From Geosiphon pyriformis uo1 (Eukaryota; Fungi; Glomeromycota), in contig JAAOMT010000312.1 in the NCBI GenBank assembly GCA_016748015.1, positions 46,743 through 110,742 on the forward strand: 64,000 nucleotides of DNA, read 5' to 3'. The notes under the pieces are model-generated. The model was not told the origin of the DNA and ran no database searches. It saw nothing but the letters and a program-made list of their open reading frames with translations. The position numbers and the translations under genes are program-made. Below, one piece after another: positions 7,253 through 63,202 of the stretch (position 1 is the first letter of the stretch; each line of letters opens with the position of its first letter).

Positions 7253-7279
7253 TGGTTATAGATTATTTTTTCTTAGTGG

Positions 7280-11677: not shown

Positions 11678-12073
11678 ATAAAACCAGAAAAAGCCCATGA
11701 AATTGACACAGGATATAACCTCAGATATTCTGGCAAAGACACTTTGGTTTTCCAATCAAAGTCCTTGACAAAAATTAACCTTAAAATTGCTCTTAAAATT
11801 CTACCTAAAGCAATGGTTCAAATTGCATTCAGATCATTATTGGAAAGCAAAGGAATTAATGTTAGAGGAGAAGTTATAGATGCAGGATATATTAGAGACA
11901 TTACTATTATACTACAGAATGAAACAGATAAACCATTCAGTATAGAACATGCTAAAAAAATTACCCAAGCAATTTACCTACTCTTAATCAACATTTCAGG
12001 TTTACAATCAGTTAACAACAGAGAAAAATTGAGAAAAAGTGAGAGAAAAATGCAAGGTTTTGGTTCAACTGGA
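11678..12073 (+). pseudogene. dUTPase domain within pol of element A
   Basis: Five trimeric dUTPase motifs, decayed: DTGYNL, FRSLLESKG, VIDAGYIRD, KITQAI, RKMQGFGSTG. Confidence 0.88.
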
Positions 12074-12529
12074 CAATTTACAGTACTAGTAAACATAGCT
12101 CTCAATGCACAGAATGAATCTCACCAGATTCTTCAACTTCTCTAACCAATCACTATTTCATCTTTTGAAGAACATCACGAAATTTACACTTGCTCAAAAC
12201 CTACCACTATCCAACAAATTTTTGAATTCAATGAACAAATCTGTTTAAAGCATAAAATCTCAATCCCAAATGTTTATATTCCCAAAGGAATGAAAAAATT
12301 TTGAGTTACATTCTATAACCCCAATAACTATCTTATTGTCTTATTGAACAAATTAGAAATTGGAATTATATACAGTAACATTTTTCAAGATGAAAACCCT
12401 CAAATTGTCTCTAATTTCATCGAAATTATAAAACATATACTACTTCCAAATCCAAACATCATTCTTACTACTGAAAACTATTACCTGTAAGAAAAAAAAC
12501 TCTCTCAAATCAACATAGGTCTCTTAGAA

Positions 12530-18390: not shown

Positions 18391-19666
18391 TGGACACTTC
18401 AAACTCATCATCATGCCATCAGCCCCACTTATCAAAGTCAAAAAAGAAAAAAAGAAATCTACCTGGGAAGCCTATTAAGTGTTCTGGGCTAATAAAGACT
18501 CAAATAGCAATGGAGCATTTGGTATCGACAATGAGCTATCACTGATACTCTTTTGGAATGACAAGAGAAAAAAAACACAAAAAGAAGAACCTACCTGGAA
18601 TGCCAACCAAGCCTGGGTAACTGATAATGATCAGGACAAAATAACAACTTGGAAGTGGAAAGAAGATAACAATAAGAAAAAAGAGAAAGAAAAGGATAAA
18701 GGTCCAACACTAATCACCACTTATAGCCCATATGCTTACTCTTCACCACTGCCATCTAACTATCACTGACTGAAATTAGTATGCATAGATTGTGGCAAGA
18801 AATTGTTGTTAATGAGCACATGCTGTGGCAATGATAAGAAATACTCCACAGCAACAAAATTCTATTGTTGCCCATGCATCATAGAATGGTTTGGATGCCC
18901 AAAAAGACAAAAAAAATGGAATAATGAACCTTGTCTTGCATGTGAAACTATTTTGTCTAATAAAAGAATGTGGAATAACATTCCTGGGCAAGGAGGAACA
19001 TGTAACAAGACATGCCAGTATATTATCCTGATAAATAACTGGGTATGCAAAGAAACTCCAATTGACAATGCCTAAAAAAGAGTGTTGTAACAGTTAGAAA
19101 AATATCCACATGATGAACATAAAATCTGGAGAATGGTGAGTGCAAAAGCAAAAGACATCACTACCAGAGAGTTATTAGAAATTAAGAATAACTCACTCTC
19201 ACTGCCTGAATCCGAATATGTCCTCACTCTTGACGTCTTTGGTAACATAGAAAATGATCCAAAAGAATTCCATAAATATTACCAGCAATTAGCACCCACT
19301 AGAGAAGAGCAAGAGCAGTATTTGAAGCAGTTGAATACTCGATTATGTCAACACTGCTTAATCCTATGTAACTTTCAATATTGTAATGAGTGTGATCTCA
19401 TTTACAATCCACCCACACACATAATCTACACAATCTCAGAAGAAAAAGAACTAGTCAGCAGCTGCACATCAGAATTGAAATTAATTTTCAATTCCAATTC
19501 AAACTTTGACAATAATGATGACAAAAACAACAGTTCCAGCTCTGCTCAATGTGGCAATGAAAAATATAGCAAGTCAAACTCTGATTCAAACCCCAAAACA
19601 TATATTGTACTTCTTGATCTCACCAAAGAACAAAAACTCAGATGGTTTAGTGATAATAATGAAGAT

Positions 19667-20062
19667 ATCATACCAGAACACATACATAATACTAATGCAG
19701 GGTTTGATTTGAGATATTCAGAAAAAAATCCCATCAAATTAAAACCCCATTTATGCACTTGTATTGATCTCAAAATGGCACTGGAAATTCTAGCAACAAT
19801 AATGGTTCAGTTAGCATCTAGAAGTAGCTTAGCCAAAAAGGGAATCAACATCAGAGAAGGAATAATTGATGCAGAATACATAGGAAATATCATTGCTATA
19901 TTACAAAATGACTCGAAAAAGACATATATTATAGATTCAAATGAAAAAATAGCACAAGCAATATTTCTACCTTTAGTAAAAATAGCTCAATTAGTATCAG
20001 TGAGAAACAGAGAAGAATTAGGAATAACAGCAAGAGGAATACAAAAATTCGGATCAACAGAT
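19667..20062 (+). pseudogene. dUTPase domain within pol of element B
   Basis: NAGFDL, ASRSSLAKKG, IIDAEYIG, EKIAQAI, RGIQKFGSTD within ORF 19133-20455. Confidence 0.92.
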
Positions 20063-20499
20063 AGAATAGATGTACCAATTAATATGGCAGAAAAAAAAAT
20101 TATTAACAAGGGAGAAATTATCTCCGCCCATCAACCAATTTCCATTCCACCATATGACCAGTACATATTAGTTATAAAGAGAAAAGTAAAGAATCAAGTT
20201 CAGATTTTTGAGGCAGAATCAATACTTTGTGAATCAAGAGAAATTGAATTGGTCAATTTATACATACCAGCAAAGAATCATAGTCACATCAAAATTCTCA
20301 TTTACAACAACATGGAAAATATTATCGAAATACCAAAAGGAATCATTATTGGACATTTAACTACTGAAATTGAAAATCAACTGTCAGATACTATTCCAGA
20401 CTTTCCACAACTATGTGAATATGTGGATATCACATCTCAAACCATATATGGATGAGAAGAATGTTATTTGCTCCAGTCAGAACAATTGGAATAAATAAA

Positions 20500-28020: not shown

Positions 28021-28031
28021 GGAGAAGATTA

Positions 28032-29004
28032 TGTTACCAGTAGAATTTAGCTATTAATTAACATGAAATTACCCTCATAATTCCTATTATTAATTAGCAT
28101 ACATTATTATTTATTTTAATTATCACTTATTATTTAATCAAATTATCAAATATCATTACTCAATTAATAATCTGATTTGTACTCTAGAAATTAAGATGAT
28201 CAAATTACACAATATCTTGAACCATTTAACATAGTTAAAATTCGCCGAAATCAATGGAAATTGGCCAAAATAATTAATAGTTCAGTAAAATAACTTGTAG
28301 TTTGCCAAAATGTATCTTTAGTTCACCCAAATTGTAACAAAGAGAAAAGTGCAAGTTCAAAGTCTAGTACTACAGCAAGTTGTATAAAAAAAAAGCTTCT
28401 CTCTTTAAAAAAATGTATTTTCTCATAGTATCTTATCATAGTACTTTACTTTAGATATCTTAATTGAAACAAATCACTTTTTTATACATTCAAATAAAAA
28501 TTAAAATATTTAAAAACCAAATCCTTAAATTATTACACTTGAAATTTCCTCAACACAACTAATATTTTAAAATTTATTAGCTACCAATTTCAATAATCTG
28601 TTAGTGATTCCAGGTCTGGATAAAAAACGTTTCTCTTAACACAATTCTATTTCTTTTACATTTCTTTTATTTTTTTTTTATTTTCTTATTATAATCATTA
28701 GGGTAGCCTACAGACGAGATTCCTGTAGAAGAGTTGACTTTCACAGCAAAGTAACTATACATTTTTAGTGAACTTCCAGACAAGCAATTTCTGAGAAAGA
28801 GTTAACATTTACTACAATATAATTATACAAAGTAACTGGCAAGAAATTGGCCATTTTACTTATAAGTCCAGCAATTCAAATTATAGGAGATAATTTAGAG
28901 ATAATTTTAGTTACTGGAGGTTCAACTACTTCTTGAAAATGTGAATTCACAGCAAATCAACATTAACAACATTCAAGAAAAGAGACCAAAAACCTCTGGT
29001 AACA
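28032..29004 (+). repeat. 3' LTR of element A
   Basis: Direct repeat of 7280-8251, preceded by purine-rich aaggagaaga. Confidence 0.93.
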
Positions 29005-29075
29005 ATAGTTATACTATAATTAATTTTTACAGTTTTTTAGATTAAGCAATAATATAAAAAATTCTTTAATTTTAA

Positions 29076-34600: not shown

Positions 34601-37267
34601 TGTTACAAGTAATTATTTGGGGTGTTGATACAAATAACAAACTCATAACTTAATGCTTAATAGCTGGATAATATTGGTAATATCTAAAAATTTGGTAATT
34701 TGAAGGTTTTGGTTAAGTTTTTTGTATAATAAACAGAGATTCAATGGTTGTTTTAATAGTCTTCCAGAATAGTTATTTTGTCAAATTTTTTTCTTTAGTG
34801 TGATAACTGGTTTATTTTGGCAGTTATGCCCTTTTGATAAGTTATTTTCAGTTTTTGAATTCTTTACCCTTATTTCTAGATCTTTTATGAAGCTATTCTT
34901 GATGTCAAAATACTCAATATTTAATTCTTGTAATCAATTTAGTAAACAGCAAAGAAATAAAACAAAGAAAATAAAAAAAATTAGTATCCTATCAATAGTT
35001 ATGATCAAAAGTTATTGGTCTAATGTAGTTAAGTATTAGATTCTATTAACATGAAGTGTTGATAGAATAAAGATGATTAATATTCTTTAATTAAATAATG
35101 ATAACATAAATTCAAGTGATAATTGATATTTTATTAATGTGTAATTTGATTCCACTACAAATTGTAAAAAACTATATTTTAAAGGAAAGAGTATAAAATA
35201 ATTAATTTAATAATAGATATTAATTCTAAACTAGATTCTTGTATCAATTCTTAGATAGATTTTTTAATAAATTTTTTAATAAATTTTCTAATAAATTCTG
35301 TTTTTTTTGCTTTTAATACTCTTGCTATATATATATATTTCTTTGTTTTATGAGATTTCATATTTTTCTGAGCAATGTGTTCTAATTTACTAATATTACT
35401 TACATTGCTAAGCAGTATGCTCTAATTTACTAATATTGTTTATATTACTAAGCAGTATATCATAATTCACTAGCAATATACATATTGTTAAGCAATATGT
35501 TATAGTTTTTTAATATTGTGTTCACATGTTAAATACTATTATCTTATTAATCTATTTTCTTATCTGTTTTTCTGGCTTTCTTTTTTTGTATTTTTTTATA
35601 AGTAATATTATTTCTTCCTTTTAATATTGAGCTCTATTAAAATTTTTACTTTAAATTAAATTTATTACTTTTTTTTTAATATTGTTTGTTTAATTCTGTT
35701 TTTTATCTTTTTATATTAAGAGTTGTTTATTTTTTCTTACTGGTTAATGATTATTGTTTTCATTTCTCTGCATCAATATTATGCATTATTACAGGTGATT
35801 ATTTGGGGTCTCAAAGCAAATAACAAATCCATAACTTGGTGCTCAATTGATATAATGATTGGTTTCTAAAGATTTTGGTTATCTAAAAGTTTTGGTTAAG
35901 TCTTTTGTATAATAGACAAAACTTCAATAGTGTTTTAGTAGCCTCTTAAAATCACAATTCCAATTTTTTTCTCAGCATAATGGCTGGTAATTTGGCACAG
36001 ATGCCCTTTTGGTAAGCTATCCTTAAATTATTAAACTTTATACCTTTCCTTTGGGGTCTTTTATCAGGCTATCCTTGACGTTAATTACTCAGTGCTTAAT
36101 TTTTTTAATCAGTAATAAATCAACAAACAAAAGAAAATAAAAAAAAAATAAAAAATTAGTATCCTGTCAATAGTCGTGATCAAGAACTATTGTTCTAATG
36201 TAATTAAATGTTGATTTTATCAACATAAAGTGTTGATAAATGAAAGAGTGATTAGATTTTTAAACAAATAACAATAACATAGATTTGAAAAATTGAAGAG
36301 ATATTTTATTTATATAATTTTATTTCGGTTGATAGCAACTATTCTTAAAATGAGAGTTAATAAATAGAGAAGAAAGGGGATTATTCTAAATTAATAAAAC
36401 TTTATTGAATTCTCCAGAAATTCTTGAATTTTCTTGGAATTGCTTTTTTTGTTTTTATTATTTTCACTATAAATATATAATTTATGTTATATGAGATTCC
36501 TTGAATTCCTTAATTTTCTAGCCAAGAATCCTGAAATTCCTGGAATCTTGCAATTCCTTATACAGAAATCCTGTAATTCTGGAATTCTGCAATTTTTTTA
36601 AGAGAAATTCTGGAATTCCACTTTTATTATGTCTATTCTGATTGGCTAATTTATGTACTAATATTTAATTCCTATATTCTATGAGTAATAGCATGTATTT
36701 TGGCATAATATTTTTATTATTATTGCTGAACTATTTTAGTTCCTGTTTTTTTAATAGATCTAAAAGTGCAATATATTGTTTGGGGTTGTAATTAGAGTTT
36801 AAATTATTGTTGTTGTTCATAATAAATGTAGTTAAAACTATTGTTGTCATTATTATTAGAGTCTAAATCAGAATTAAACTTTAATTTTGGTTCTGATGCA
36901 CATTTGCTAATTGGTTTTTCTTCTTTGGGAATCAAATAGATCATGCATAGTAGTGGCTTGTAAATAAAATTACAATTATTACAATAATTAAAGTTACTGG
37001 AAATTAGGCAATGTTTATATAGTCTTGCATTTAACTGTTCCAAATGCTGCTCTTGCTCTTTTTTAGTAAGTACTAAGTCTTGGTAGTGTTTGTGAAATTG
37101 TTCTGGATCACTTAGAATATCAAAAAATATATTTGGATTTAAAATAAAAATAGTTTCAACTGGTTCTGGTAAGTTGTTTTTAATCATTAATATTTTACTG
37201 GGTGAAGTATTTTCAACTTTGACACTTGTTATTTACTAGATTTTGTCTTTATTGTGTGGATAATCAT
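34601..37267 (-). mobile_element. Internally deleted Gypsy element 'E': 3' LTR 34601-35607, PPT, joined directly to Cys-rich/dUTPase-start region
   Basis: PPT gagctcaatattaaaaggaagaaataa before LTR. ORF 36804-37187 homologous to ORF 19133 of B. Frame reaches ..MHNIDA (dUTPase motif 1) then jumps to the 3' end. Confidence 0.72.
35787..36690 (-). mobile_element. Solo LTR (B-like) inserted in element E
   Basis: Perfect 4-bp TSD GCAT; GAATTC-rich array at 36500-36620. Confidence 0.88.
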
Positions 37268-39970
37268 TGTTATTAGAGGTTTTTGGTCTCTTTTTTTGAA
37301 TGTTGTTAATGTCTATTTGTTGTGAATTCATGTTTTCTGAAAGCTAATAAACCTCTGATAACTGAATTTATCTTCAAATTATCTCCTATAATTTGAATTA
37401 CTAGACTTATGAATAAAATAACCAATTCCATGCCAGTTACTTTGTGTAGTTACATTGTAGTAAATATTAACTTTTTCTCAAGAATTGCTTGTTTAGAAGT
37501 TCACTAAATGTGTAGTTATTTTGCTGTAAAAGTCAACTTTTTTACAGAAATCTTGTCTGTAGGCTACTCTAATAATTATAATAAAAAAATAAAAAAATAT
37601 AAAAAAAATAGAATTTTGTCAAGGAAAACGTTTTCTATTCAGACCTGAAATTACTAACAGATTACTGAAATTGGTAGCTAATCAATTTCAAAATATTAAT
37701 TGGGTTTTGAAAATTTCAAGTAAGATAATTAAAGATTGAGTTTTCAAATATTTTTATTTTTATTGATTTGTAAAAATATGTAAGGGATAATTGCTTTTAA
37801 TTAAAATATTTAATAGAAGATAAGATATATTTTTTTGGAGAAAAAAACTCTTCTTTTATGTAACTTGTTATAGTACTAGTCTTTGAACTTGCATTTTTCT
37901 CTTTGCTATAATTTTGACAAACTAAAAATACATTTTGGCAAACTACAAGTTATTTCTACAAACTATTAATTATTTCGGCCAATTTCTACTAATTTCGGTG
38001 AATTTTTGAATATTAAATGGTTTAGGGTATTGTGTAATTTGGTTATTTTAATTTCTATAATTAGGTTATTAATTGAATAGTAAGATTCAATAATTTGATT
38101 AACTAATAAATAATAATTAAAATAATAATAATAAATATTAATTAATACTAGGAATTAGAAAAATAATTTTATGCTAATTAATAGCTAAAATTCTATTGAT
38201 AACATAATTTTTTTCTCAAAACTAAGCTTTGTTAAAGTCCAAGTACTATCTGTAATATTAATATAGTAGTCCAAAATAATTGAAGTGATTTGATCTAAAA
38301 ATTGTTAAAATTTCAGTTTTGTGAGCTTTTCAATATACTGAATCTTTATTGAGTAAAATATTAGATTTTGTAGAATGTTTTCACAAGTATTGAATAAATT
38401 TTAGAGTTTAAATGTTGCTCTAAGTTTATAATAAGTATTTGTTGATCCAGCTGCTGTCTTGAATTCATAGTAAATTTGTTTTTATATAGCTTTAAAAGTA
38501 ATATTTGTTGCTTCCAGTTCTATTTTTTATTCATATAATGTTTTTTCAATATAAAAATATCTATAGATAAGGGTATGTTTATTGTTTTGTTCATTAAGAA
38601 ATAGTATAAGTTTTTGTTGGATTGTGATATTTGGTAAAATGTTAATAGGAATGAATAAAAGGTTTTTTTTAAAGCTTGCTTTAAAAGTTCTGGTAATTGA
38701 ATTCCAGAATAACTTCTTGTTTTTTTTCTATAAAAGTAATAATTTTGCAAATTATTTACTATTGAAACTGTGGTTTTTTTCTAAATGTAATTAATTTAAC
38801 TTTTATTAATTGTTATAGATAAGCCTAGAAGTGTTTTCAAAGCTAACATTAATTTCTAGGATATTTGTTGAATATTTTAGAGAATAATTATGATAAAAAT
38901 GACTAATTAAGAATAAAAAATTTTGAAAAAAATTTGAAAAAAATAAAGAAATTATTTTTGGGTATAGAAGTTTTATATGTTTTTTTTTGGTTTAAGTATT
39001 TTTTGTAATTATTTACTATTTTTGTTTTATGTTTGTATATTATTAAAAAAGTTATAATGCTAAATTTAAGTGTTTTAAGTTTAGTTGTTATTCTATTACA
39101 ACTATTGGTTTTAAGTTTCAGAAAATATCTTTGGGATTAATTAAAAAAAAATATGTACTAATTTGTAAAATTAATAATTCAGGATGATTTCTAGAATAAT
39201 AGTGTTTCAATCAATTTCTATGTACAACTTTTGCTAAAACTTTGTCATCAAGTTTTAACTTATAAGATTTATTGTCTAAAATTTTATGAATATAAAATGG
39301 TCTATCTTATTTATGTTTAAATTTTCTACTCTATTGTTTTTCAGTCTTAGTTTTGTGTAAGAAAACTTTATTTTTAATTTTAAATTTATTGGTGATTGGT
39401 AGCTAGTAGCAGTTTATTGTTATGTCATTCTTTTTGTTAAGCTTGAGAGTGTTCAATATGGGTGGCTACAATTTATTATTTCTTTTCTAATGTATTAAAA
39501 AGAGTATAAGCTCTTTGTTGAAGTGTTTTTTGAAAGTTTTTTTCAGTAATTGGTTGGATTAAATATGTTTTTACTGTAAAATTGATTGGTAATATTGCTG
39601 TTTTTTTATAAGTCAAATTAAATAGTATGTGCTTTGTTGTATCTTGTTTTAATGTTCTGTATACTAATAATACTAATAAAATAAAGATATCTTATTCTTG
39701 TTTAAAGTCAGTTGAGACTTTGATAATTCATATAATATTCTGTTAAAATGTTTTATTAATTTATTTGTTTATAGATAATATGATGAAAATAGAAGTTATT
39801 TAACATTAAACTATTTACAAATTTCTTGTATCAAATTATTTACAAAATATGTTTCTTGATTGAATAAGAGTTCAATTAGGCATTTATGTCTACAAATAAT
39901 GTTTTTATAGATAAAATTTGCTACTGATTTTGCATCTGTTCTTTGGATGACTTTGGCTTTGAACCATTTA
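37268..39970 (-). mobile_element. Truncated second copy of family A (3' LTR 37268-38204, 3' ORF, integrase C-terminal half)
   Basis: Reverse complement aligns to ~26290-29004; breaks at the KW.EAK motif of integrase. Confidence 0.85.
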
Positions 39971-41888: not shown

Positions 41889-44800
41889 TTAAAGGCAAAG
41901 AGGTAAAATATGAAAGGGTCGAACTGGTTTGGTTTCTTCTAGAGCCAAAGCATGCCAGAAACAATCTTTGGTTTGTTGGATCCGATTAGTAGCTTCACAA
42001 GCTTTTCCTAGATAAAACCTAAAAAAAGAATCATCAATGTTTATCAATAATCAAATTGGTGATCAGATTAATTCATAGTTAAATACTAAGCACCATACCA
42101 AGCTTCGGGACAATCCCAACCATTCCCTTTGGTAATACTTTCGAGGACACCTTTACCAAGTTCTATCTCTCCCATAATCAAGTAGGTTCGGCCTAGGTGC
42201 ACTAAACTTGGGACGTGTAGGGTATCCAGGGAGAGGGCTTTATGAAATGAAGTGATGGCCAAAGGGTAATTCGATTGACAGAAATGGTAGAGACCAAGCT
42301 GATAAATCATTATGTTTAGGATTATATTAGAAGTTGAAATCCCTTCCTAATCTTTGCTCTAGTTTTGTTTCAACCCACCTGACACCAAATATCAGGATTA
42401 GCTCCATCAATTTCTTCAGCACATTCTAGAGCTTTTTGTGTTTCCTCTAAATTTCCTAGCCTTCGAAAAGACGATGCTGAAGCAAGCCATATGTCTGCTA
42501 ATGCCTTAGTGGCTCTTTTTCGTCGTTTTCGAACACTCAATGGTAGTTGTGAATAAGTATTAGAAGGTAATATTGATTTAATGGAACCTATACCACTTAT
42601 GGTTGGTGTGGGGCTACGACGAATGGATGAACTCGAATTTTTGGAAGATGCAATAGAAGAAGCATAATTCGCTTTTGGGACCTCTAATATTTTGACCCGA
42701 ATATATTGAGTTTTAATAGATGAATGATAAAAAAGTTTTAATTTTAATCAGTGATAATACCTATTATAATTACCTAATGTGTCCTTACTGTTACCAAAGC
42801 TTTGTACAGATCCATCGGAACTGGTGTTTTCTTCTTTCTTGTGTCGAAAATTAGAAAAGTTACGTGAACTTTTCGTTGAGAGAATCTTCGGGGTTTGTAT
42901 AACTAAGTTTTCATCACTCGTATCTTTTTTACGCACACCAATGCTCTCATAAACAGATCCAGTCGGGGATATGGTATTATCGGGAAAAATTTTCCCGTAG
43001 AGCTTAAAAAGCTCTTGGTGATTCTGAATCGCTGCCTCTGGCCCTTGTGCAAGTTCTAACAGTGAACATCGAGTCATTTTAAAGGAGAAAAATTCTTCTC
43101 CATCATCATTACCGATTGCGGTCAAAGTTTCATAATCAACAGAAAAATCAGCTGTTTCCCATAATGATTTTTTAGCAGCAGCTTCACACGTCTTTAATGC
43201 ACCTTGAATGTCTTTCTTTGAAGAATATAGTAAAGCTAAGAGATGCCAACATGGAATATTAGAATTCTCCAAAACCAAAGCTTGCTGAACAGTGACAATC
43301 GCCTGCGTAATTTCATGGGTGATAGCATATTCAAGAGCAAGTTGATAGTGTGCTTCGAAATATTCTGGATCTATTTCGATTGAGTTTTTAAATGCGGTGA
43401 TAGCTTTTTCATGAAGATTAGGCCTTGTCTCTGAATCAGTGGCTTTGATCAAAATCATATTAATGAATTAGAATGTAAGATCATAGCTTTTTTACTACGC
43501 ATGTATTGATTGAAACCTTCCAACAGATTTTTTGTCCTGACCTTCTATTGCCAATAATTTATAACCTACTCCAACGCATCGCCAGATTTGGGCTAACAGT
43601 TTTGTATCTATTTTTGATTCATCTTCATGGTATAATTTTAATGCTTTTTCAGCATACTCAAGAGCTTTCGTGGACTAAAGATTGATTCAATAATTTAGAT
43701 TTATGGGTGATAATGTCGGGGAACTAAAGAAACTTACGTTTTTCAAATATTTTCCCATGAGATCCACCCCCCTTAATAGTGTACGGACGGCATCTGGCGT
43801 AGTTTCAATTTCGACGGCTTTAGAATCGTAAGGGTTTGAGTTATATAGCGTTTGCTCTATTTCTTTCTTTTGAATCTCTTTTGTTTTCTCTACCATTGCG
43901 ATGTATGCGCTTAAAGCCAATTCAGCTTCCTCATATTCACCCATAGTAATTAAGGTATTGAGAAGATGCCGTAATATTCGTGGCGAATGAAAAGTCATTT
44001 CCGCTGCGCGGTAAAGCATCTGGAAAATTTTCCATCTAGCATGTTCAATCATGCCTTTTCAATGTATGAAGGAGAAGCAGTGCACATGATATCGTTTCGC
44101 GTAAATAGTCGCGCGCTATCCTATCGCGTTTGAAAAAAGACGAACAAGGAGAAAATATATAAGGAAATGCACGATATTTTCTTGCACCCTAACCAAGTAC
44201 AAACTTGATTCTAATCGAAAGGGTTAACCTTAGAGTGCAAGAACAACATCCATCTTGCATTATCCTTTAAATTTTTAATATATTTTCACCTATGTTCCCT
44301 TTAACAAAATATTTCAAAAAATACTCTACCTCGACAACACTTCGCATTTCTGAAGTTTTTCCATAGCCAACTAATGCCCAATCTGACATAACTTGATCAA
44401 CCATTTCCAATACACGCCAATTTACCTCCCCCGCTTTAGGAAAAGAGGTAAGTTTATATAAGACATTTTCATATTGTGTGTGTATCTCAGTCAGCTCACT
44501 ACGAAAGGTGTGAGGCGTCAAAAGTGAGGAACTCCCGCTGATGAAATGCAAAATTAAGGGGAATGAACAAAATCAGGAGATCAAGAAAAATAAGAATTAT
44601 GATAACCCAATAAATCTTTTTCACGCACTTTAGGGAAAACGTTTCAGATATACTTGGAGGTACATAAGTACCCTCTTGATAAGTTTTTGAAAGAAATTTG
44701 ATGAAATTTCGATAAATAATTGCTTTTTTGTTGAGCTGAAATTTGTCCCAAATTGCAGCGTATAATTGATACGTGCGAAAAGCCTCCAGTGCCCCATTGG

Positions 44801-46643: not shown

Positions 46644-48066
46644 TCACTTAGGCTTTCTTAATTTAGGTGGTGCATTGATATCAACAACTTTAGCCAAAGT
46701 GCGATTGGGTAAGAAAAGCGCACCATCCCCCCATAAACGCTTAGCAATGATCGCTATATTTCTTGTATCATCGATTCCTGAATGAGGACGTCCTTCGAAT
46801 TGCAAACCATAACGCGCTAACATGCCATCAATGTTAAATTTCTCACAATTATAGAAATGTGCAAACAATGCTCTTAGATCTACCCATGGAAGCGAAAAAT
46901 ATGAAGGCCGTGGGATTCCGGAAATTTTGCATTGTTTGCGAACGAAATCACGTATGTCCCATGGACCTAATTGTGCACTAATAATGAGCTATGATATTCA
47001 GGGCCAAGTAAAATTTATGACAAAAATCATGCATTTACCATCTGTTATGAATGCGCAGCTTTTCCCGTAGAATAGCTAAAGCAAACCAGAGTTACCATGT
47101 TAGTGAATTGACACCAGTTAACAAACAGATCAGAGAGAAAAAGTGCGTGATACTTGATATCGGTGTAGGAATACTTGAAATTCAGTTAGCATTTCGGGAA
47201 AAAGCGGGCTTGCGTCCACAGTGGTCTTAAGAGAAAACAAGAATTTCAACCTTAGAGTGTTTAAATTCGCACCCCATCATAAAACTAATTACCTGCGGTA
47301 TTCCTGTAAGTTTTTTGCAAAACTCGGTCAACTTGGGTTTAACGCTGGGTTTTACATAAGAATGAAAGACGTCAACCTGAAAATAAGAATTTTGATATTA
47401 CACATAAATAAGAATGGACCTTAAGTATTTATTAAACTCAAAATTACTTACGATATTGAAAGTATTGCTCTCTATCAAGAGGACGGGGAATTCTATAATT
47501 TCATGCGAGTAGTTGAAAGTACCCCCTTCTTCACATGTTGCTTCGACATCAAAGCACAAGTAATAGTCAAAGGGTTGAGGCTTTGGATTTCTGGAGCAAT
47601 CGGATAATTAGGAATTTCAGTGGTTCAATTTCTTCACCGGAAAGAAGTTGAAAATTTTAAAAACCTACGGTTTTGAGGATGTGAAGAATTGAGTGATTGG
47701 TTTAGCATCTTTTTCTGTTTCCTGAGTTGATGAGGCTGGGGTGTCACTGACAGGCAACGTACTTGTCTGAGCTGTACTTTCATATTCCTTGAAAACCTTA
47801 GGTGTTACAGGCTCAACTTCTATGTCTCCAATTAGCGAGACATATGCATTGTTCTGCCAAGGCTCTCGTTGTATGTGTGTTAAATAATGTTTCAACCGTT
47901 TCTTTAACACGCTTTTGTGTCCACGTGGGTCCAGGCCCAGCGCGGAAAGTTGAGCTCGCAGGACTTCCACGGAAATAGTGTTGGAGGTCGTATAAGTTGT
48001 TTGCCACGAGGTCATAATTAGGGGACGAACAAACGCTGAGGTCAAGGGCACCTTTCTGAGAATCAT
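46644..48066 (-). CDS. ERI1: ERI1-like 3'-5' exoribonuclease (SAP domain + DEDDh), multi-exon
   Basis: SAP: VEVLRAQLSALGLDPRGHKSVLKKRL; PFDYYLCFDVEATCE...HEIIEFPV; FITDGPWDIRDF; GLQFEGRPHSGIDDTRNIA. Confidence 0.9.
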
Positions 48067-49149
48067 AATAAATATTACGTGAAGAAGTTTTATAAATAAT
48101 TTTATCAATTTAATCAATTATTTTTTTTTCATTTGCAATACCAATCAATTATTTTAAACAAAAAAAATATTCTAACCAATATATATATATTTTAACATTA
48201 TTACTATTTAAGTAAAATGATTTATTCAATCAAAAGTTAAAGTTGATTTTTTTATAAGTAGTTTTAATTCGGCCAAATTAATTAATTATTAAAATAATAA
48301 TGTAATGACAAAATTATATATAATCAAATATATTAACAATTTATTAATTTAATTTTAAAAAATATTATCAAAAAACAATTTCTTTAATATAAGTTATTTT
48401 AATATTTACAGTTTTATTAGACATCAAAGTAAAGGCTATTTATCCAAAAAACTTTTAATAATTAGCAATAATTTTTAAATATTATCAAAATCAACAATAT
48501 TACCAAAAAACAAAAAAGTGCTTAATTATTATTTTATTAATCTAATTTTTAAAATTAAAACTAAATTTGTACATAAATATATAACTTGTTTTGTTTTTAT
48601 AACTGGCAAAAATTAATTGAAATTTAATATATTAAACAATTTAATTAAACCCAATTTTGCAAATGTGTTATTATTGTTATTATTTACAATAAAAAGAAGA
48701 TTATTGTTTACAGCAAAATTAAAATTAGATATTATAATTGGTAATAAAATTAATAAAAACATTAAAAAAGCCAAAAAATTATATATTTTAAATCAAAAAT
48801 AGTAATTTAAAAAATATTAAAAAAAAATTTTTTTTAACTATTTTGGCTTTTAAACTATTTAAATAGCAAAAAATATTGAAAATAAAAAATAACAATATTA
48901 TATTATAGATTAATACAGCCAAAAAAGATAAAATTAATATTAAAATATTTATAAATATTATTAATTTATTTTAAAGTAATAAAAAAATTAAATAAACTTA
49001 AAAACATTTATAAATTATTGTAATTAACAATAATTAATAAATTAATATAAAAATATAATAAAACAATTATAATATAAATAAATTAAATTATATATAATTA
49101 TTATAATATTAATATAATATTAAATAATAATATAAAAATAAAAATAAAA

Positions 49150-54211: not shown

Positions 54212-55575
54212 TGTTATGGTTGAAACTTATATTTCTTATTAATTATCACATGTATTAGCCACTAATGTCATATAAATTAGCCACTCTATTTTTAAAAAGT
54301 AATCATTGACCTGATCAATGACTTGACCATTGACCTGATCATTGACCTGATCATTGACCTGATCATTGACCTGATCATTGACTTGATTATTTACCTAGTC
54401 GTTGACCTGATTATTGACCACTTTTGATAGCTATATAAATAATGAATTTCTTAGCTATAGAAAAGCATGAAGAAATTAAGAAAATAAATAAATAAATAAA
54501 ATAACAACTTTCATCTCAATCTTTCTCTTATCACTAATTTTTCTTTTCCTACATTCAAGTATCTGAACATCTTAAAAATAAAAGATTACTTGTTAGTTAT
54601 TTTCTACTCTTTTCCTAAAACATGTAATTGCAGCATTTGAAGATTATTAAATAAAATGTAATTGAAGAGTACATCTGATACCTGATATTGAATTTTAAGA
54701 GCACCAATGTGAAACATAGAATTATACCAGATGTGATCATTTATTGACAGTATGGACTATCTCTCTATCTTCAGATTCTCTGGTTATCTTTGAAAAGTAT
54801 AGCGACTGAGATATTTTATGAAACTAATCTCGCACATTGAATCCATACTTATTCAATTTGCTCTTTGAAGTTGAATTCCCTTTGATTCTTTTTATCACCC
54901 TACAATTCTGTTCTCCCTTGCTATCTATTAGCTTGTTACTTCAACCCGTAACATAAAAGTGGTGCTCTCTGTGAGGTTGTTAAAATCCACTTTGCTTCCT
55001 ATTGTATGGGTGATTATTCATATCTATTACAACAATCGGAAGAACACTTTAAAGCATACAACAAAAACGATTTAGACTTTATTGAACTCAATCCTTTGCC
55101 CTTTTGCTTGATTTGCTTTCCCATTGAAGAACAATCTAGCAGACAATTCCAAGACTTTTGGAACTGGTTCTTAAACGAGCATTCAACTGAAACCTATACA
55201 GCTTATACAATATATTACTTTGATCAAGCTTATTTTGAAGACAACTTTGAAGAAAAAAACAACAGTATTAATTAGCTCTTATATTCTGCAACCTTTGAAC
55301 AACAGCTCCCTGATTTTGAATATTTGAATTATCAAATCCACATTTGAATTGCTGCTCATCAATTAACAGAAACTCCTTTTGAAACAAAAAAAGAAAACTA
55401 TCAAATCACTCCTGTTTTTGATCTCTTTTCAAGTGAATCAGAACACTCCACACAAACAGTTACATCTGAACCAATGGCTCAAGACCCTCTGCAACAAAAC
55501 ATTCTGATTGCTCTCCAAGGTATACAGACTGCTTTAAGGTGAAAAAACAACACTCCATTACCATTATTCAGAGAT
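54212..55575 (+). mobile_element. 5' end of second family-F Gypsy: LTR 54212-54953, PBS 54960-54976, gag start 55006, truncated at 55575
   Basis: LTR is inverted homolog of 50277-50969; TGGTGCTCTCTGTGAGG; gag ...MAQDPLQQNILIALQGIQTAL..NNTPLPLFR cut by the inverted duplication. Confidence 0.85.
54303..54420 (+). repeat. 12-bp tandem repeat (TCATTGACCTGA)n in LTR F
   Basis: About 9-10 units here, about 5-6 in the other LTR copy (50810-50880). Confidence 0.9.
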
Positions 55576-56480
55576 CTTTAAAAGAAATCCTATATAATGT
55601 GCTTTCCTGCCACAAAATAATTGTTGCTTGAACTCTAGCCTAAATCAAAAGAGGAGAGTGCGACTAAAAATGAATCATCTTTTTTATAAACTTCTCCAAA
55701 ATTATAGAATATCGAAGCAACAGTTCTTTGTATATGCTATGTAAATCTTCAGGGATTAAAATAAGTAAAATAATAAGGGGACGAACATATATCACGTCAT
55801 TATTGATTACTATAGAACCATTCCTCCCCCCCTGGTGAGATATGCAATCAGACATTCCATAATAATGTTATTTCACATTATAATAATATGCTATGCATGA
55901 TGCATAATTATAAATACATGCATTATAAATATATGGCATAATATGACAAACTTGTATAATAAATATGATCAAAAATATACTATGGTGCAAACCATTTATA
56001 GTCATCAAACAATTTATATAATTTTAAATTGTATCTAGTCTTCCAATTTTAATAATATTAAAAAACTAAACTGTAAATATGATAGATTAAGTTTAATTTT
56101 TTGAATTATATTATATTTTATAAAGTTATTAAAGTTTAAAATTAGCCACTTTTATTATAAATCTTTAATTTTCGGATGCCGATCAATCAGATTTTAGCCA
56201 ATCAGCAATCATTAAAGTCACGTTACCACGTAATAAATCATCAAAGTATTATCATTTTCAGAAAGGTTTTCAATTAATATTAATCTAATCATTAGATAAT
56301 TACTTTTTTATAAAAATATAATATCTCTCGGCCTGCATGTCTTCTGCTGGTGACACGGCACCATTAACCATAAATATTTTATTCACACCACTATTATATT
56401 TAGTTGTCATTATTAGGACAGAAATCCAAATATCAATATTGTTCACACCAAATGCCAAAAGAATCGTAAAAGTGCTATAG
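55576..56480 (-). repeat. ~905-bp inverted duplicate of 62101-63006
   Basis: Direct comparison; near-duplicate ORFs 55664-55855(-) and 62727-62918(+) differ by one residue. Confidence 0.95.
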
Positions 56481-56609
56481 TACAAACCATTTATAATCAT
56501 TAAAAATGTAGATCAGTCCGAAATTTTAAATGATGATCTTTACGTGTTTTTATACATGTGTTTTTAATATATTATTTATAATAAAAAATAAAATTTTATT
56601 AAATTTTAT

Positions 56610-58463
56610 ATAATATAAAACCAAATACAGTATTACAAAGTTTGAATTTGCAATAAAATTTTGGAAAAAAATGCACTTATGTCTTATGCTTTTGATTAAT
56701 TTTTCAATTGTATTTTTTGAGCAAGAAAATTGGATTCCAAAGATATTATTTAACATGCACAACAAAAAACTTTTAAAGAATTTTTGATTTTTTCTTTGTA
56801 TTTTTAGCATTTTAATATTAATCTTTTTAATGGCCATTTTCTTCATTTTATTAATATTTGTTTAATTTTTTTAGACAATCTTTGAAGTTTTTTATCTAAA
56901 TATGTTTTCAGAAAAATCATTAATTGTAATTAATTATCTAATCCAAAAGAAGTATTTTGTATTAATGATTGTTTTTTACCTAGACTTAAATTTATTTTGC
57001 TTGCAATTAAAGCATTTTTATTTATAATTTAAATATAATTTCTCAAAAATTGAAATTGTTTTATATTTAATTTGTTTAAAAAAATAGTTTGCTGTCTAAT
57101 AACCATCTTAATTTACACCAAATTACAAATAGCATTGTGCTTTTTTTGATATATTAAAATAGTTTTTTATATTATTTTGTTGTAAATGTAAATGTTCATC
57201 AATTTTAGTTATAAATTTACTGACCATAATTAATTTTCTATTTTCTTTTTTTCTTAGTGGCAAATTTTCATGCTTAACTTATATGTTATATTTAATATTA
57301 TTTGAATAAAAAATGCATTTATTATGAACATAAAAACTTTTTCTTTCTTTCTATTAAGTAAGTTAGAATGTATTCAATTTATAAATTTATTTTCATACTT
57401 TGATATATACTTTTTATGCTCATATATTTTTTTTAAAAATTTTTTTTGAAATTATAAAATGTCATTTTTTTCATATTTATCATAATATAAGCCTTAATGA
57501 TATTGTTAGAATAAATAACCAAAAATTTTGAGCCATCTTATTGCAATCATAAAACTAATAGTTTTTTTTTCATTATTTTAATATTAAGAAACAATTTATG
57601 TTCAATAAATTTTTTAAATGTAATTGAAATGGTATTAAAGTTTTGGTTTCTAATCCAAATATAACATTTTTTTACAATGTTTTTATCATTAATTATTTTA
57701 ATTGTTTTTTAGTGTTTTCTATGTTTTAATATTAAAAGCTTATTATTAAACAATTAATACTTTGCTAAATATCAAATTTTTCATGCTTTTTATATATTAT
57801 TATCAATAAAAATTTTTTGGACAATTTTTAAATTGGCATTAATTATTCCATGTCTATTATTATTATTTAACAAAATAAAATATTCAAAAATAGCTTTTAT
57901 TTTTGATTATATTTAAAGACAATTAATTAAACATGTTGTTTTTCTAAATGTTTTTTTAACTCTTGTTCTTTTTTTATTTAACTAATATATAAATCAATCT
58001 CACTTTTTGAATTGCTTAAAAATTTATTAGATTTGGACTATTGTAAGTTTGTAATTTGAGCATTACTAATATTAAAAAAAGTGGTAATTTTTTTAGTTTT
58101 GGCTACTGCTTTGGTGAATAAATTATTTGGTTTATATTTATTATAATAGGTTAACTTTGGTATTTTTTTTGTTATATAAAAATTTTGCTTCTTTTTTTCT
58201 AAATGATTGTTGTTTTTTTATACTAAATTAAGTTTTTTTAATTTTATATTTATTCTAATTACAGCTTCTATATTTTCTGTATTATTCTATCTACTGTTAT
58301 TATTGTTACTTCACTTTCTATTATTAATATTTAATCTGTTAAATTTGTTTACTTTAATATCATAATTATTTATTAAAGTGGTATAATAAGTTTTTTTATA
58401 TAATCTTTTTGTATTTTTAACTAAATTTTTAGCTTTTTTTTTTTCTTTAGAATGAAATGGTAT
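56610..58463 (-). pseudogene. Decayed DDE transposase (Tc1/mariner/IS630-like, fungal HDE..FY.ND type)
   Basis: Minus: WLKIFGY...GLYYD; VHNKCIFYSNN...LPLRKKENRKLIMVSKFITKID (=HDECIFYSND..PLRKKGNGRSIMVSEF); GVN*DGY*TA; CCAC.IISLE.NFLAQK; HKCIFF.KF.C. Many stops/frameshifts. Confidence 0.75.
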
Positions 58464-58568
58464 TTTTTTATGTAATGTGATATTAATCTAATATGTAATT
58501 GGTGCTTGAACAGAATTAAAAAATTTGAAATATGTAATATTATATAACAAAATTGTATTACAATAAAA

Positions 58569-61500
58569 ATGGCGTTTTTAACTCAGATATATATCTATTC
58601 TTTAAATCTTTTTGGTTTTAATTTAAACTTTAATTTTTGTTTTGTAGTTCTGAATAAAAACCAATCAAAGAAAGCTTCTTCAGCATTAATCAAAGGAAAT
58701 TTTTTATTTGGATTGGTAAAATTATCTGAACTAAAAATTCAGATAACATCAATAAAAATAGTTATTACAAAAACTTTTTTGACTTATGACAAAGAATTTA
58801 GGCAAAAAGTTTAATATTAACAATTAAACAACTAACTCAAAAGAAATTCAATTTTCAAATTAAAGCCAATTTTTTACAGCTAATAAAAAATTTATTGCAA
58901 ATAATTATTAATTAAAAAACTAGTAGGTAAGGATATTTAAGATAGATTTCAATTTTAGTATTACAGCTTAGTTATGATCTCTCATTTTCATATTTAATAG
59001 TTAACAATATGCCAAATTATTTATGAATTTATTATCCAAAGAAGAATATCCAAAATATTATGATGTAATTAAAAAGCCAAAATTCTTAAACATAGTCGAA
59101 ATTAGTACTATATACTTCTTTTTTATTAGTCACTTAACACTTGACATATGTTTTCTATATTATATTAATAAAAATTCGAAAAAATATTATTTATTTATGA
59201 ATTTAATCAGGATTTACAATTGATTTTAAAAATGTCATGTATTTTAATGATAATTCATATATTTTCAAAGATGCTGTTACCAGACGAAATTAGAGATATT
59301 GTTTAGCATGAAATTACCCTTATAAATCTTATCATTAATTAACATATATTATCATTTCAAATTATCACTTAGTACATTAGCAAAATGTTCAAAATTATCA
59401 TTTAATTAATAACCCAATTTGTACATAACACAAATGTAACCTAATTGCGATGATCAATCATGCAATACCCCGAACTATGTAACATTCAAAAAGTTCGCTG
59501 AAATTTGTAGAAATTCGCCGAAATAATTGATAGTTCACCAAAATATCTAATAGTTCGCAGAAATAACTTGTAGTTCGCCAAAATATATCTTTAGTTCAAC
59601 GAAATAGTAGAAAATAGCAAAGTTCAAGTTCATAGAATAGTGTTATGACAAGTTGTATAAAAGAAGAGCTTTTCTCTTCAAAAAAATGTATCTTACTTTA
59701 GATTTATCACTTAGAACCATTCCTACACACACAAAAAGAAATAAATATCAAATAATTCAAAAAACCAAACTCTTTAAATTATTGCACTTGGAAAATCCTC
59801 AAAACCCAACTAACGTTTTGAAATTGATTAGCTACCAATTTCAGTAAACTGTTAGTGACTCCAGACCTGAATAGAAAACGTTTCTCTTGACAGAAGTCTA
59901 TTTCTTTTACATTTCTTTTATTTTTCTTTTCTTTTCTTATTACAATTATTAGGGTAGTCTACAGATGAGATTCTTGTAGAAGAGTTGACTTTCACAGCAA
60001 AGTAACTACACATTTTAGTAAGCTTCCAGACAAGCAATTCCTGGGAAAGAGTTGACGTTTACTACAATGTAACTACATAAAGTAACTGGCATGGAATTGG
60101 CCATTCCACTTATAAGCCCAGCAGTTCAAATTATAGGAGATAATTTGAAGATAAATTCAGTTACTGGAGGTTCAACCACATCCAGAAAACGTGAATTCAC
60201 AGCAAACAGACATTAACAACATTTAAGAAAAGAGACCAAAAACCTCCAGTAACAATGCCAAATTCTTACAAGTAAGAAGTTTATTAGGTCTTTACAAAAA
60301 AATCTGGGTTTTATTTACTTGAATTAATACATTTTATATATATTTTTCATCAAAACAAACTTATTAGAAAATATACAACATTAACAAAAAAAAGCTATTC
60401 AAAATTATAGACTTTAAGACAACTTCAGTTCTTTTAATTAAAGTAAAACCAAAAATCATTCAATTTCAACCTAATTTTCTCAAATCAACATCAATTGATA
60501 TAAGTTTTTTGATTACTGATATAAGTTATTATATATTACATTCTAATAAGTTGTTAAAATATTCAACAATTAAAATTTTTTTTACAGCTTAGAAAACCAA
60601 TTCTAAAATTAGATCATAATTTGGTCGAATACATGATAGGTATTTTAGTTATTATAATTTTTTTTGGTATAATTCATCATTTAAATATTAAATTTAACTG
60701 AAAACTTTTATTACAAAAGATTTTATATATTTTTTAAATCCAAGTAATTTTTTGAAATACAACTTCATAGTCATTAAAAAATTATTTGTGAATTTAAAAT
60801 AAGTATTTACATTATAATAAAAATGATGTTAGTCAAAATTTTCAAAGTTGTTTATTGTTTTTTATCTTTCATAGATTGCAAAAACAGTTTGCAGATTTTT
60901 TTTTCAGATTTAATTAAGTTAATTTTTAATCATAAATACTATTCTTATGTTTTATATTTTTAAGCTTTTAATTATTTCTTTTACCAGATAAAACACAATC
61001 TATTCCTAAAATTTTACAAAAAAAATGTTCAAAACATTGATTATTGAAAAACATATAATATAAAATATTGTAGGAAAATGTTATATTATGTTTAAGATAT
61101 AACATTTGTTTTGAAATTATTATATAATTACTGTAAGTTTAATTTTACAAAACCTATTTATTAGATATTTTGAAGAATTTAATGACAATAATATTTATGT
61201 ATATAAATTTTTATATATAATGGCATTAAAATTTTTTACTACTATTAACAATTGAGAAAATACTCTTCTATATGTCTAAAGTTATATTAATATACATAAT
61301 ATACTATTTAACACTATGAATTATAGAAAGTTTTTTAGCAAAATCTGTTTTGGTTTCTTTTATATAGCATATTCTTAATTAAAAACCAATTGATAATAAA
61401 TTAAAAACTCAAAATAAACAAATTTTTTTTTATTTATATTTTTATTATTATATATTACTATACAATAACAAAAACTAACAAATATCTTTGAAAATTAGCA

Positions 61501-62282
61501 TATATAGAATAAAGTATTTAAAAAAATAATATTGAAAATCAGAATTTTGATTGATATAAATATCATTTAGTCATATATTTTATCTAATTTAATAGTTAAG
61601 TTATATGATTAATTGTTTTTAATTACAACATTATCCCATTTAGTTTCCCCAATCTATTTTGAAAACTTTGTTCTAAGATCTTCAAAAAAAACTTTACATC
61701 TGTCTAAACTAATGTATTTACATAATGAAAACAAACACATAAAAAAAAAACCAACTTTGATAGAATACTATAAAAAAAGATAAATTATCTATAATTTACT
61801 GTAAAGTGCATTTATTAAAAAATTAATTGTATTAATTTTTTTCATAAATTTTGAGCTGTGCCTTTGTTTTAAGATATAAGAGTTAAGATAAGTGATTAAT
61901 CTTTTACAATATCTCTTAATACCAAACATTTTACCCACAATATTACTCTTAAGCTAACAGCCAATTATATTATAGTTATTCTAATTTTTGCTTCAAATCT
62001 GCTGTTTTTAATACCAAAGCTGGTTGTTTTCAATGTTTATTAAGAAAGACACAAGATTACAAATAAAGTGCAAATGATATTCTCAAATTTTTTAACAATT
62101 ACTTATAATACTTTTATGATTTTTTGGCATTTAGTGTGAACAATATTAATATTTGGATTTCTGTTCTAATAATAACAACTAAATATAATAGTGGTGTGAA
62201 TGAAATATTTATGGTTAATGATGCCGTGTCATCAGTAAAAGACATGCAAACCAAGAGATATTATATTTTTATAAAAAAGTAA
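58569..62282 (+). pseudogene. Intron-containing bromodomain + BAH (RSC1/RSC2/RSC4/polybromo-like) pseudogene
   Basis: QQYAKLFMNLLSKEEYPKYYDVIKKP (59010-59080); DLQ..FKNVMYFNDNSYIFKDA|KFLQ across the solo LTR; BAH-like HNLVEYMIG/DFIYI..NP, FKT...IVGKCYIMF, NIYVY..Y...FTTINN*; C-terminal ..GVNNIDIWIS...ERYYIFIKK*; gtaag/ag intron signals. Confidence 0.7.
59275..60254 (+). mobile_element. Solo LTR of family A inside the bromodomain exon
   Basis: TGTTACCAG...CAGTAACA with perfect 4-bp TSD ATGC. Confidence 0.93.
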
Positions 62283-63202
62283 TTATCTAATGATTAGATT
62301 AATATTAATTGAAAACCTTTCTGAAAATGATAATACTTTGATGATTTATTACGTGGTAACGTGACTTTAATGATTGCTGATTGGCTAAAATCTGATTGAT
62401 CGGCATCCGAAAATTAAAGATTTATAATAAAAGTGGCTAATTTTAAACTTTAATAACTTTATAAAATATAATATAATTCAAAAAATTAAACTTAATCTAT
62501 CATATTTACAGTTTAGTTTTTTAATATTATTAAAATTGGAAGACTAGATACAATTTAAAATTATATAAATTGTTTGATGACTATAAATGGTTTGCACCAT
62601 AGTATATTTTTGATCATATTTATTATACAAGTTTGTCATATTATGCCATATATTTATAATGCATGTATTTATAATTATGCATCATGCATAGCATATTATT
62701 ATAATGTGAAATAACATTATTATGGAATGTCTGATTGCATATCTCACCAGGGGGGGAGGAATGGTTCTATAGTAATCAATAATGACGTGATATATGTTCG
62801 TCCCCTTATTATTTTACTTATTTTAATCCCTGAAGATTTACATAGCATATACAAAGAACTGTTGCTTCGATATTCTATAATTTCGGAGAAGTTTATAAAA
62901 AAGATGATTCATTTTTAGTCGCACTCTCCTTTTTTGATTTAGGCTAGAGTTCAAGCAACAATTATTTTGTGGCAGGAAAGCACATTATATAGGATTTCTT
63001 TTAAAGAAATTTTAAATCCTAAATTTTATTTCGTTTGAAATATGATTATAATATTAATAATCAATTTTGTTCTATATAACATTTATATAAAATTGCTTAA
63101 GACAAATTGAAAAAGCTCATCGGGGATTCTTCCACTTTATTCAATTTATAATTTTATGAAAATTGGAAATCTATGCTTTGAAAAGCTTAAAAAAAATCGA
63201 AT

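Follow-up and report, generated by a model that had tools for sequence, protein, structure and literature searches.

A decayed IS630/Tc1/mariner-type transposon family of Geosiphon pyriformis that carries a bromodomain–BAH gene as a probable passenger

A stretch of 64,000 nucleotides from the glomeromycotan fungus Geosiphon pyriformis uo1 (assembly GCA_016748015.1, contig JAAOMT010000312.1, positions 46,743 to 110,742 of the forward strand), hereafter the window, contains at positions 56478-62599 a DNA transposon with two decayed, divergently oriented genes. One, on the minus strand (56645..58463), encoded a DDE transposase and begins with a Met codon that maps to 58463, the start that had been predicted; the other, on the plus strand and here called gene 2, has its ATG at 58569, is interrupted by introns and has a last open frame that ends some 290 bp short of the right terminal inverted repeat, at 62282, in agreement with the earlier mapping. 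Gene 2 belonged to the type of the chromatin remodeler subunits Rsc1, Rsc2 and polybromo, with a bromodomain followed by a BAH domain. The two starts are separated by a spacer of 105 bp (58464..58568), putatively a shared promoter region. We read the whole as a dead copy of an IS630/Tc1/mariner cut-and-paste family of about 60 copies in which gene 2 was a passenger at the time of the last burst of movement, and we assign to this reading a probability of roughly two in three.

The element is bounded by 27-bp terminal inverted repeats (TIRs) at 56478..56504 (plus strand) and 62573..62599 (minus strand), each bordered by the dinucleotide TA (56476..56477 on the left and 62600..62601 on the right), which bears out the boundaries given in the original prediction, a reading of the letters of the window without database searches. 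The left terminus reads TAGTACAAACCATTTATAATCATTAAA; its beginning, TAGTACAAACC..., is a decayed form of TGGTGCAAACC..., and the right end (...GGTTTGCACCA) is the reverse complement of the better-kept version of the terminus, followed by TA. A pattern representing the 25-base core of the TIR occurs at exactly three sites in the window, compared with none in 100 shuffles; the third site, 55985-56009, falls in an inverted duplicate of the element's own right end. A terminus search of 58464-58568 was empty, so that no TIR stands between the two starts, as had been predicted. Both ends are bordered by TA in more than 10 copies that have unrelated flanks, and for one of these insertions a paralogous empty site is available: copy L024 lies in a repeat that stays uninterrupted in L035 and L052. 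The empty site reads ...gacTAagagccc... with one TA, and the filled site reads ...tacTA(element)TAaaagccc.... A single TA in the empty site versus TA on both sides of the element in the filled one indicates that TA, the proposed target, is duplicated on insertion and that the insertion comprised both genes as one unit. Three copies (L028, L029 and L035) break off on the left at one and the same position, about 74 bases in from the end, and have 12 identical bases, tttattggttaa, outside the break; the cause is an insertion or a truncation common to all three.

In the genome as searched (128 Mb, 792 contigs), the bromodomain exon has 60 matches, the DNA of the transposase gene at least 40, at 82-87% identity, and the right ~497 bp of the element likewise at least 40; the 408-bp right flank of the window copy is found at the window locus only. 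The 20 copies that were fetched and read, out of about 60, run collinear with the window copy across both genes, from terminus to terminus, except for one insertion peculiar to the window copy (59275-60254), and have unrelated flanks. At least 19 other copies thus hold both genes between the same TIRs, with TA on both sides, which confirms the host-like gene as part of the mobile unit, and further copies with the same arrangement, which the original prediction had proposed to look for, do exist. All full copies have two genes between their TIRs, unlike a single-gene unit. Three size classes can be distinguished. Class A is of full length, about 5.7 kb, and comprises the window copy, L021, L025, L033 and L035; class B (seven copies) lacks the part corresponding to window positions 61056-61760, and class C (six copies) lacks 60820-62049, with BAH exons deleted in both. 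Since the borders of the deletion are identical within each class, the deleted forms must themselves have moved, and the low number of transversions in class B, the lowest of all, marks this class, from which BAH exons are gone, as the youngest movers.

Of the differences found between one copy and another, about 95% are exchanges of C and T or of G and A. For the definition of frames and exon borders, we therefore used a transition correction, in which C was called at alignment columns with C or T and G at columns with G or A across the copies; the corrected calls were matched exon by exon to the fetched loci by local tblastn. Relative to the corrected calls, the copies differ almost only by C>T and G>A changes, which affect 19-46% of the C/G sites, and transversions amount to 0.1-0.7%. 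The near absence of transversions implies that the copies were nearly identical at insertion, in one recent burst, and were hypermutated later. The window copy has changes at 44% of its C/G sites and in every context (CpG 62%, CpA, CpC and CpT 38-45%), a pattern that looks like a process of the repeat-induced point mutation or deamination type that is not limited to CpG. The least-mutated copy found, on contig C689 at about 580300-582900 (loci L020 and L045), has a transposase piece that is 97% identical to the corrected reading.

In the window, the transposase gene contains many stops caused by C>T and G>A changes, and its C-terminal ~80 codons are gone, with a deletion of about 265 bp near 56644/56645. 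The corrected minus-strand reading is one uninterrupted, intronless frame of 724 codons, which gives a protein of about 716 aa from the first Met, and real stop-free pieces of the family match it at 72-97%. Its motifs ..VVHDECIF.., ..FAFDNSSNH.. and ..FHCELNFIERYWG.. include the presumed catalytic residues D, D and E, which map near 57320, 57023 and 56649; from D495 to E629 there are 134 residues with a Cys-rich insert, a spacing that departs from the canonical one. One real family piece has a weak match to the Pfam family DDE_3 (20.6 bits, cut-off 28.6). A profile built from six real pieces retrieved 1972 proteins at E<=0.001 among 1.8 billion, mostly encoded on contigs of 2-4 kb; DDE_3 was recognized in 13 of 14 intact relatives (best 3e-9), with P0040, at 30.1 bits, the sole one above the cut-off of 28.6, and HTH_33 in two of the 14. 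A search of PDB sequences with a profile of 14 transposases gave no match. An AlphaFold model of L065, a natural 713-aa relative that is 55% identical, has a mean predicted local distance difference test score (pLDDT) of 72.8, and in a Foldseek search with this model the best match was the mariner transposase Mos1 (5.5e-5), with the catalytic domain of Sleeping Beauty also at the top (template modelling score 0.61-0.65 by target). The TA duplication, the DDE_3 matches and the fold together place the family in the IS630/Tc1/mariner superfamily, to which it had been assigned from its target and motifs; it is an outlier there, with an enzyme of double the usual length and a D–E distance of about 134 residues. 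Five related transposase genes, encoding proteins of 476-726 aa that are 34-40% identical to the corrected reading, occur within 15 kb on one metagenome contig (L057; ENA ERZ25039503 contig_21869, 32.5 kb, 44% G+C).

In the corrected reading, gene 2 has at least eight exons, separated by GT..AG introns. The exons, all on the plus strand, were searched singly, using the sequences of real copies. The short exon 1 (58569..58586, ATG...CAG) has an uncertain border with exon 2 (58659..58924), which encodes an N-terminal region and the first helix of the bromodomain; the intron before GRQ... is placed as in the host gene described below. Exon 2 has no family match in Pfam, and no homologous protein was found for the 145-aa frame that contains it, a negative made weak by the length window of that search. 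Exon 3 (58999..59100; ...SKEEYPKYYDVIKKP... in the window copy) covers the ZA-loop region and, taken alone, matches positions 12-43 of the Pfam Bromodomain profile PF00439 with 23.9 bits in copy L027 and 21.4 bits in copy L023 (cut-off 21.7); among PDB sequences it matches polybromo-1 at 1.7e-24, and also RSC4, RSC2 and BRG1. The remaining part of the bromodomain is encoded by exon 4, the first part of which (59169..59274; ...NVMYFNDNSYIFKDA in the window copy) contains two frame breaks and the last part of which (60255..60271) ends in ...KFLQ. Exon 5 (60588..60639) is followed by exon 6 (60714..60798), in which the BAH domain starts (GDFVYLLDPS... in less-mutated copies), collinear with the host gene; exon 6 of copy L026 matches positions 6-32 of the Pfam BAH profile PF01426 (E=0.022, 15.1 bits, cut-off 30.8). 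Exon 7 (60875..60917) ends in ...FFFRPDQ, and exon 8 (60988..61096), the core of the BAH domain, matches positions 55-86 of the same profile in copy L021 (E=0.0085, 16.4 bits, cut-off 30.8) and, among PDB sequences, the BAH domains of polybromo (0.012) and Rsc2 (0.13). The matches of exons 6 and 8 stand in profile order. The end of the BAH domain is encoded by exon 9 (61151..61254; ...CESSY... in the corrected reading), and the 3' part of the gene extends over 61255..62282, with the last open frame at 61855-62282; for the 3' third, neither the host gene nor any family gave a match. Pfam searches of the longest raw open frames of the copies yielded nothing useful, and exon-sized pieces of the least-mutated copies alone gave matches. 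One bromodomain was found in the gene, and exons 3, 4, 6, 8 and 9 place it ahead of the BAH domain in one gene, in the order of Rsc1, Rsc2 and polybromo. The predicted domain pair of polybromo/RSC1/2 type is thus upheld by the Pfam match of the bromodomain, with BAH matches below the cut-off, by the PDB matches and by intron positions shared with the resident gene of this genome.

That resident gene was identified in a genome-wide BAH search, which returned four host matches and no element copies, the latter being missed because their exons are short and decayed. One of the four is the only RSC1/2-like gene of the genome (L054, contig C663), and its BAH exon matches polybromo-1, Rsc1 and Rsc2 at 1e-37 to 1e-26. 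Exons 3, 4, 6, 8 and 9 of the element align to L054 in order at 33-64% identity (local tblastn), and the element exons match the host BAH region with tblastn values of 4e-8 (exon 8), 0.003 and 0.002 (exon 9, collinear); the C-terminal part of the host gene has no match in gene 2. Four intron positions are common to the two genes: before GRQ..., within ..IE/WK.. (..IK/YK.. in the counterpart), after ..FLQ (..QLK) and within ..YTIG/D (..YHIG/D). The shared positions indicate that gene 2 descends from a cellular gene that was copied as DNA. Over 143 codons, gene 2 and L054 are 42% identical in amino acids and 53% in nucleotides, with a proportion of synonymous differences (pS) of 0.86, which is saturated, and a proportion of nonsynonymous differences (pN) of 0.38. 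Given this synonymous saturation, gene 2 is no recent local capture. The proposal of gene capture stands as regards a cellular origin with introns kept. Preservation over a saturated divergence points either to long selection inside the element or to late capture from a divergent cellular gene.

Logan contigs of two sequencing runs were aligned to the window copy; for run X3, the label "RNA" is a guess. Compared with the window, the X3 contigs show 66 A>G and 69 T>C differences, and they look like a copy with few mutations. In one piece, the end of exon 5 runs directly into the first bases of exon 6; in another, the last bases of exon 7 stand before exon 8; and in a 1155-base contig, exons 3 and 4 are so spaced that the intron of 69 bases between them is missing. 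Spliced RNA is the simplest reading of these three exact removals of GT..AG introns, and X3 is probably RNA. The contig with exons 3 and 4 (X3 contig 9) also extends about 570 bases upstream (57993-58586, plus strand), across the spacer and into the 5' region of the transposase gene, of which it covers about 470 bases, and skips 58173-58334; transcripts of gene 2 may start far upstream, antisense to the transposase gene.

The condition of exon 4 is central to the question of whether gene 2 still served the element when the family last spread. Its host-like reading spans three frames (KIRKGYHPFMN.., ..FDQGLQLI and FENAMYFN...; the host counterpart is KIKRYAYPTMDSFYQDLELMFENAKIYN), and the frame that comes from exon 3 stops within it. 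Among the copies that align there, 18 of 18 have the same lengths and the same two frame breaks, and the X3 contig, which is gapless over this stretch, has the same breaks too. The bromodomain is accordingly not encoded whole in one frame, and ...NAMYFN, with the acetyl-lysine-binding Asn, is present in the third frame. Related elements that have the same ends, moreover, exist without the gene. In the soil-metagenome relatives L071 and L072, which are 73-80% identical, the right end of the element lies directly beside the 5' end of the transposase gene with no second gene; nothing bromodomain-like was found within 2.3 kb upstream of the intact 713-aa transposase gene of L065, and no bromodomain or BAH domain among the neighbours of the transposase relatives in L057, L058 and L059-L094. 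The relatives without a second gene and the movers without BAH exons indicate that gene 2 is not needed in cis. Gene 2 was probably not working at the last burst, and by then it was most likely a passenger, an earlier function being possible. In the scheme that we propose, movement would need the transposase acting on the TIRs and nothing else; the master of the recent burst would already have had the two breaks in the bromodomain frame, and derivatives without the BAH exons would have moved last. The window copy is wrecked further, by mutation of 44% of its C/G sites, by a solo long terminal repeat (LTR) in exon 4 and by the loss of 265 bp with the C-terminus of the transposase.

Several points weigh against our reading. 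The single-exon BAH scores lie under the Pfam cut-off, the RNA status of X3 is read from three exact exon joins in a run whose label was guessed, and among the about 60 copies, of which 20 were read, one with an intact second gene could exist. The exons other than exon 4 are open after correction, the splice sites work and the Asn motif is kept, which suggests that selection had acted on gene 2 up to a time not long before the burst; a full copy could also have served the deletion derivatives in trans. In a different reading, which we hold to be possible yet unlikely, the bromodomain–BAH protein is a working accessory factor, now or until just before the last burst, and the copies sampled here would stem from a master that was itself defective and was served in trans. 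Such a factor could anchor the transpososome at acetylated nucleosomes and in this way select targets, or it could mimic or poison a remodeler of the RSC/PBAF type, so that the chromatin of the element stays open and escapes silencing. An amino acid identity of 42% kept at motif positions while the synonymous sites are saturated would fit such a role, as would the presence of just two length defects in about 700 coding bases, the retention of six GT..AG introns of which three are used in the X3 contigs, and a divergent start of its own 105 bp from that of the transposase in every copy; other mobile elements are, in general, known to be guided by chromatin readers. Against it stand both frame breaks, present in every one of the 18 copies that align over exon 4 and in the contig there, the BAH-less state of the youngest movers, and the existence of related elements without the gene, including the 55%-identical relative with an intact transposase and none in the 2.3 kb upstream; the divergence, too, could predate a late capture, having accrued in the cellular gene of another lineage. 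The original suggestion of a role for the cargo in targeting or in evading silencing is thus not supported, in view of the breaks in exon 4, the late movers without BAH exons and the relatives without the gene, and for the last burst it is contradicted. A historical version, in which a mariner-like lineage long kept its own bromodomain–BAH reader as a targeting or anti-silencing factor and the copies seen here are its last, defective generation, we likewise consider doubtful, though conceivable.

Two further explanations carry far less weight than the passenger reading. The juxtaposition of the two genes could be due to chance, with a one-gene transposon beside a cellular bromodomain–BAH pseudogene spread by segmental duplication, or with two nested elements, and a local inverted duplication of the right end and its flank does attest to rearrangement at this locus. 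With no terminus between the genes, however, with at least 19 copies that have both genes between the same TIRs in different flanks and TA on both sides, with an empty site that shows the whole unit to have been inserted, and with the flank of the window copy found at the window locus only, we regard chance as very improbable. The apparent stops could also reflect a ciliate-type code (TAA and TAG for Gln) under which both genes would be intact, and TAA is indeed the most frequent in-frame stop among the copies. Almost all copies, however, contain TGA stops, the standard code leaves open host-type frames of up to 454 aa and the 246-aa exon of the resident RSC-like gene, the differences between copies are dominated by transitions (about 95% C/T or G/A), and correction of C>T and G>A changes alone opens the entire transposase frame; this explanation was dismissed as next to impossible.

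Some features are peculiar to the window copy and its surroundings. The segment 59275..60254 on the plus strand is no intron: it is an insertion of about 980 bp in exon 4, resembling a solo LTR with TG...CA ends, which is flanked by a duplication of ATGC (59271-59274 and 60255-60258) and is missing from 18 other copies. It matches three other segments of the window (7264-8251, 28025-29006 and 37265-38192) at 75-78%, and the repeats at 7264 and 28025 are in direct orientation and flank Gypsy-like sequence. To the left of the element, 55575..56479 on the minus strand is an inverted, 98% identical copy of 62104-63007 that abuts the TA at the left terminus. This 905-bp inverted duplication consists of the last ~496 bp of the element and the 408 bp of right flank, the latter being present in the genome at these two places only; the differences read at its inner end are C>T and G>A changes, and the duplication could be the footprint of aberrant transposition or repair. 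Elsewhere in the window, open frames at 11471-12142 and 19091-20452 encode clear dUTPase domains (1e-14 and 1e-19), and host-type frames at 42751-43467 and 47668-48117, with TPR repeats and a SAP domain, sit in an island of 32-36% G+C between blocks of repeats.

The original prediction had described the combination of a transposase and a bromodomain–BAH gene in one element as one not known from earlier descriptions. A full-text literature search agrees: no description of a bromodomain or BAH gene carried by a transposon came up, within a limited coverage that is no proof of absence. What is at hand is a mariner-like family of about 60 copies, autonomous in build, that carries a near-complete chromatin-reader gene with working introns, of which spliced joins are seen in contigs of one public run, probably RNA. 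Tc1/mariner-type elements are textbook one-gene transposons. With IS630/Tc1/mariner elements such as Mos1, Sleeping Beauty and Hsmar1/Metnase, the family shares the TA duplication, short TIRs and a cut-and-paste DDE enzyme, whose relatives match DDE_3 and HTH_33 in Pfam and have Mos1 and Sleeping Beauty as best structural matches. It differs from them in a transposase that, at about 716 aa, is about twice as long, in a D–E spacing of about 134 with a Cys-rich insert as opposed to 34-41 in the classic groups (DD34E, DD34D and DD37-41D), and in the second, intron-bearing gene that it has aboard.

The capture of cellular genes by DNA transposons is known mainly from plant Mutator-like elements (MULEs), CACTA elements and Helitrons. 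As in Pack-MULEs and in the CACTA elements and Helitrons of plants, a cellular gene here lies between TIRs as DNA with its introns and has been amplified and probably transcribed. In contrast to these cases, capture here was by a mariner-like element that has retained a transposase of its own, the captured piece still has its start and a complete pair of domains, and an identity of 53% in nucleotides to the resident gene speaks against a recent local capture. If gene 2 was a passenger only, the family documents gene capture in this superfamily, in an AT-rich and probably early-diverging fungus, and warns annotators that about 60 fragments of bromodomain genes in this genome are transposon cargo and not host genes.

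In its protein, gene 2 is like Rsc1 and Rsc2 of the yeast RSC complex and polybromo-1 (PBRM1) of PBAF, with a bromodomain of the family VIII type and then a BAH domain, and its closest PDB sequences are those of polybromo-1, Rsc2, Rsc4 and BRG1. It shows one bromodomain where Rsc1 and Rsc2 have two and polybromo six and, unlike them, it is present in many copies within a transposon, has a broken bromodomain frame and has no match to the C-terminal part of the host protein. Chromatin readers that guide mobile elements are known: chromoviruses have a chromodomain, and BET proteins are used by the integrase of murine leukaemia virus (MLV) and by piggyBac, while VANC is an anti-silencing protein of the Arabidopsis element VANDAL21. 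The likeness of gene 2 to these systems is one of idea, a chromatin-binding module that rides with an element or is recruited by it. There is no homology to chromodomain integrases, VANC or BET proteins, and the reader is here a separate, element-encoded gene of remodeler-subunit type, with a function that is hypothetical. If gene 2 ever did serve the element, it would stand beside the chromodomain integrases and VANC as an element-encoded chromatin factor, and would be a novel means by which a DNA transposon reads or disturbs chromatin.

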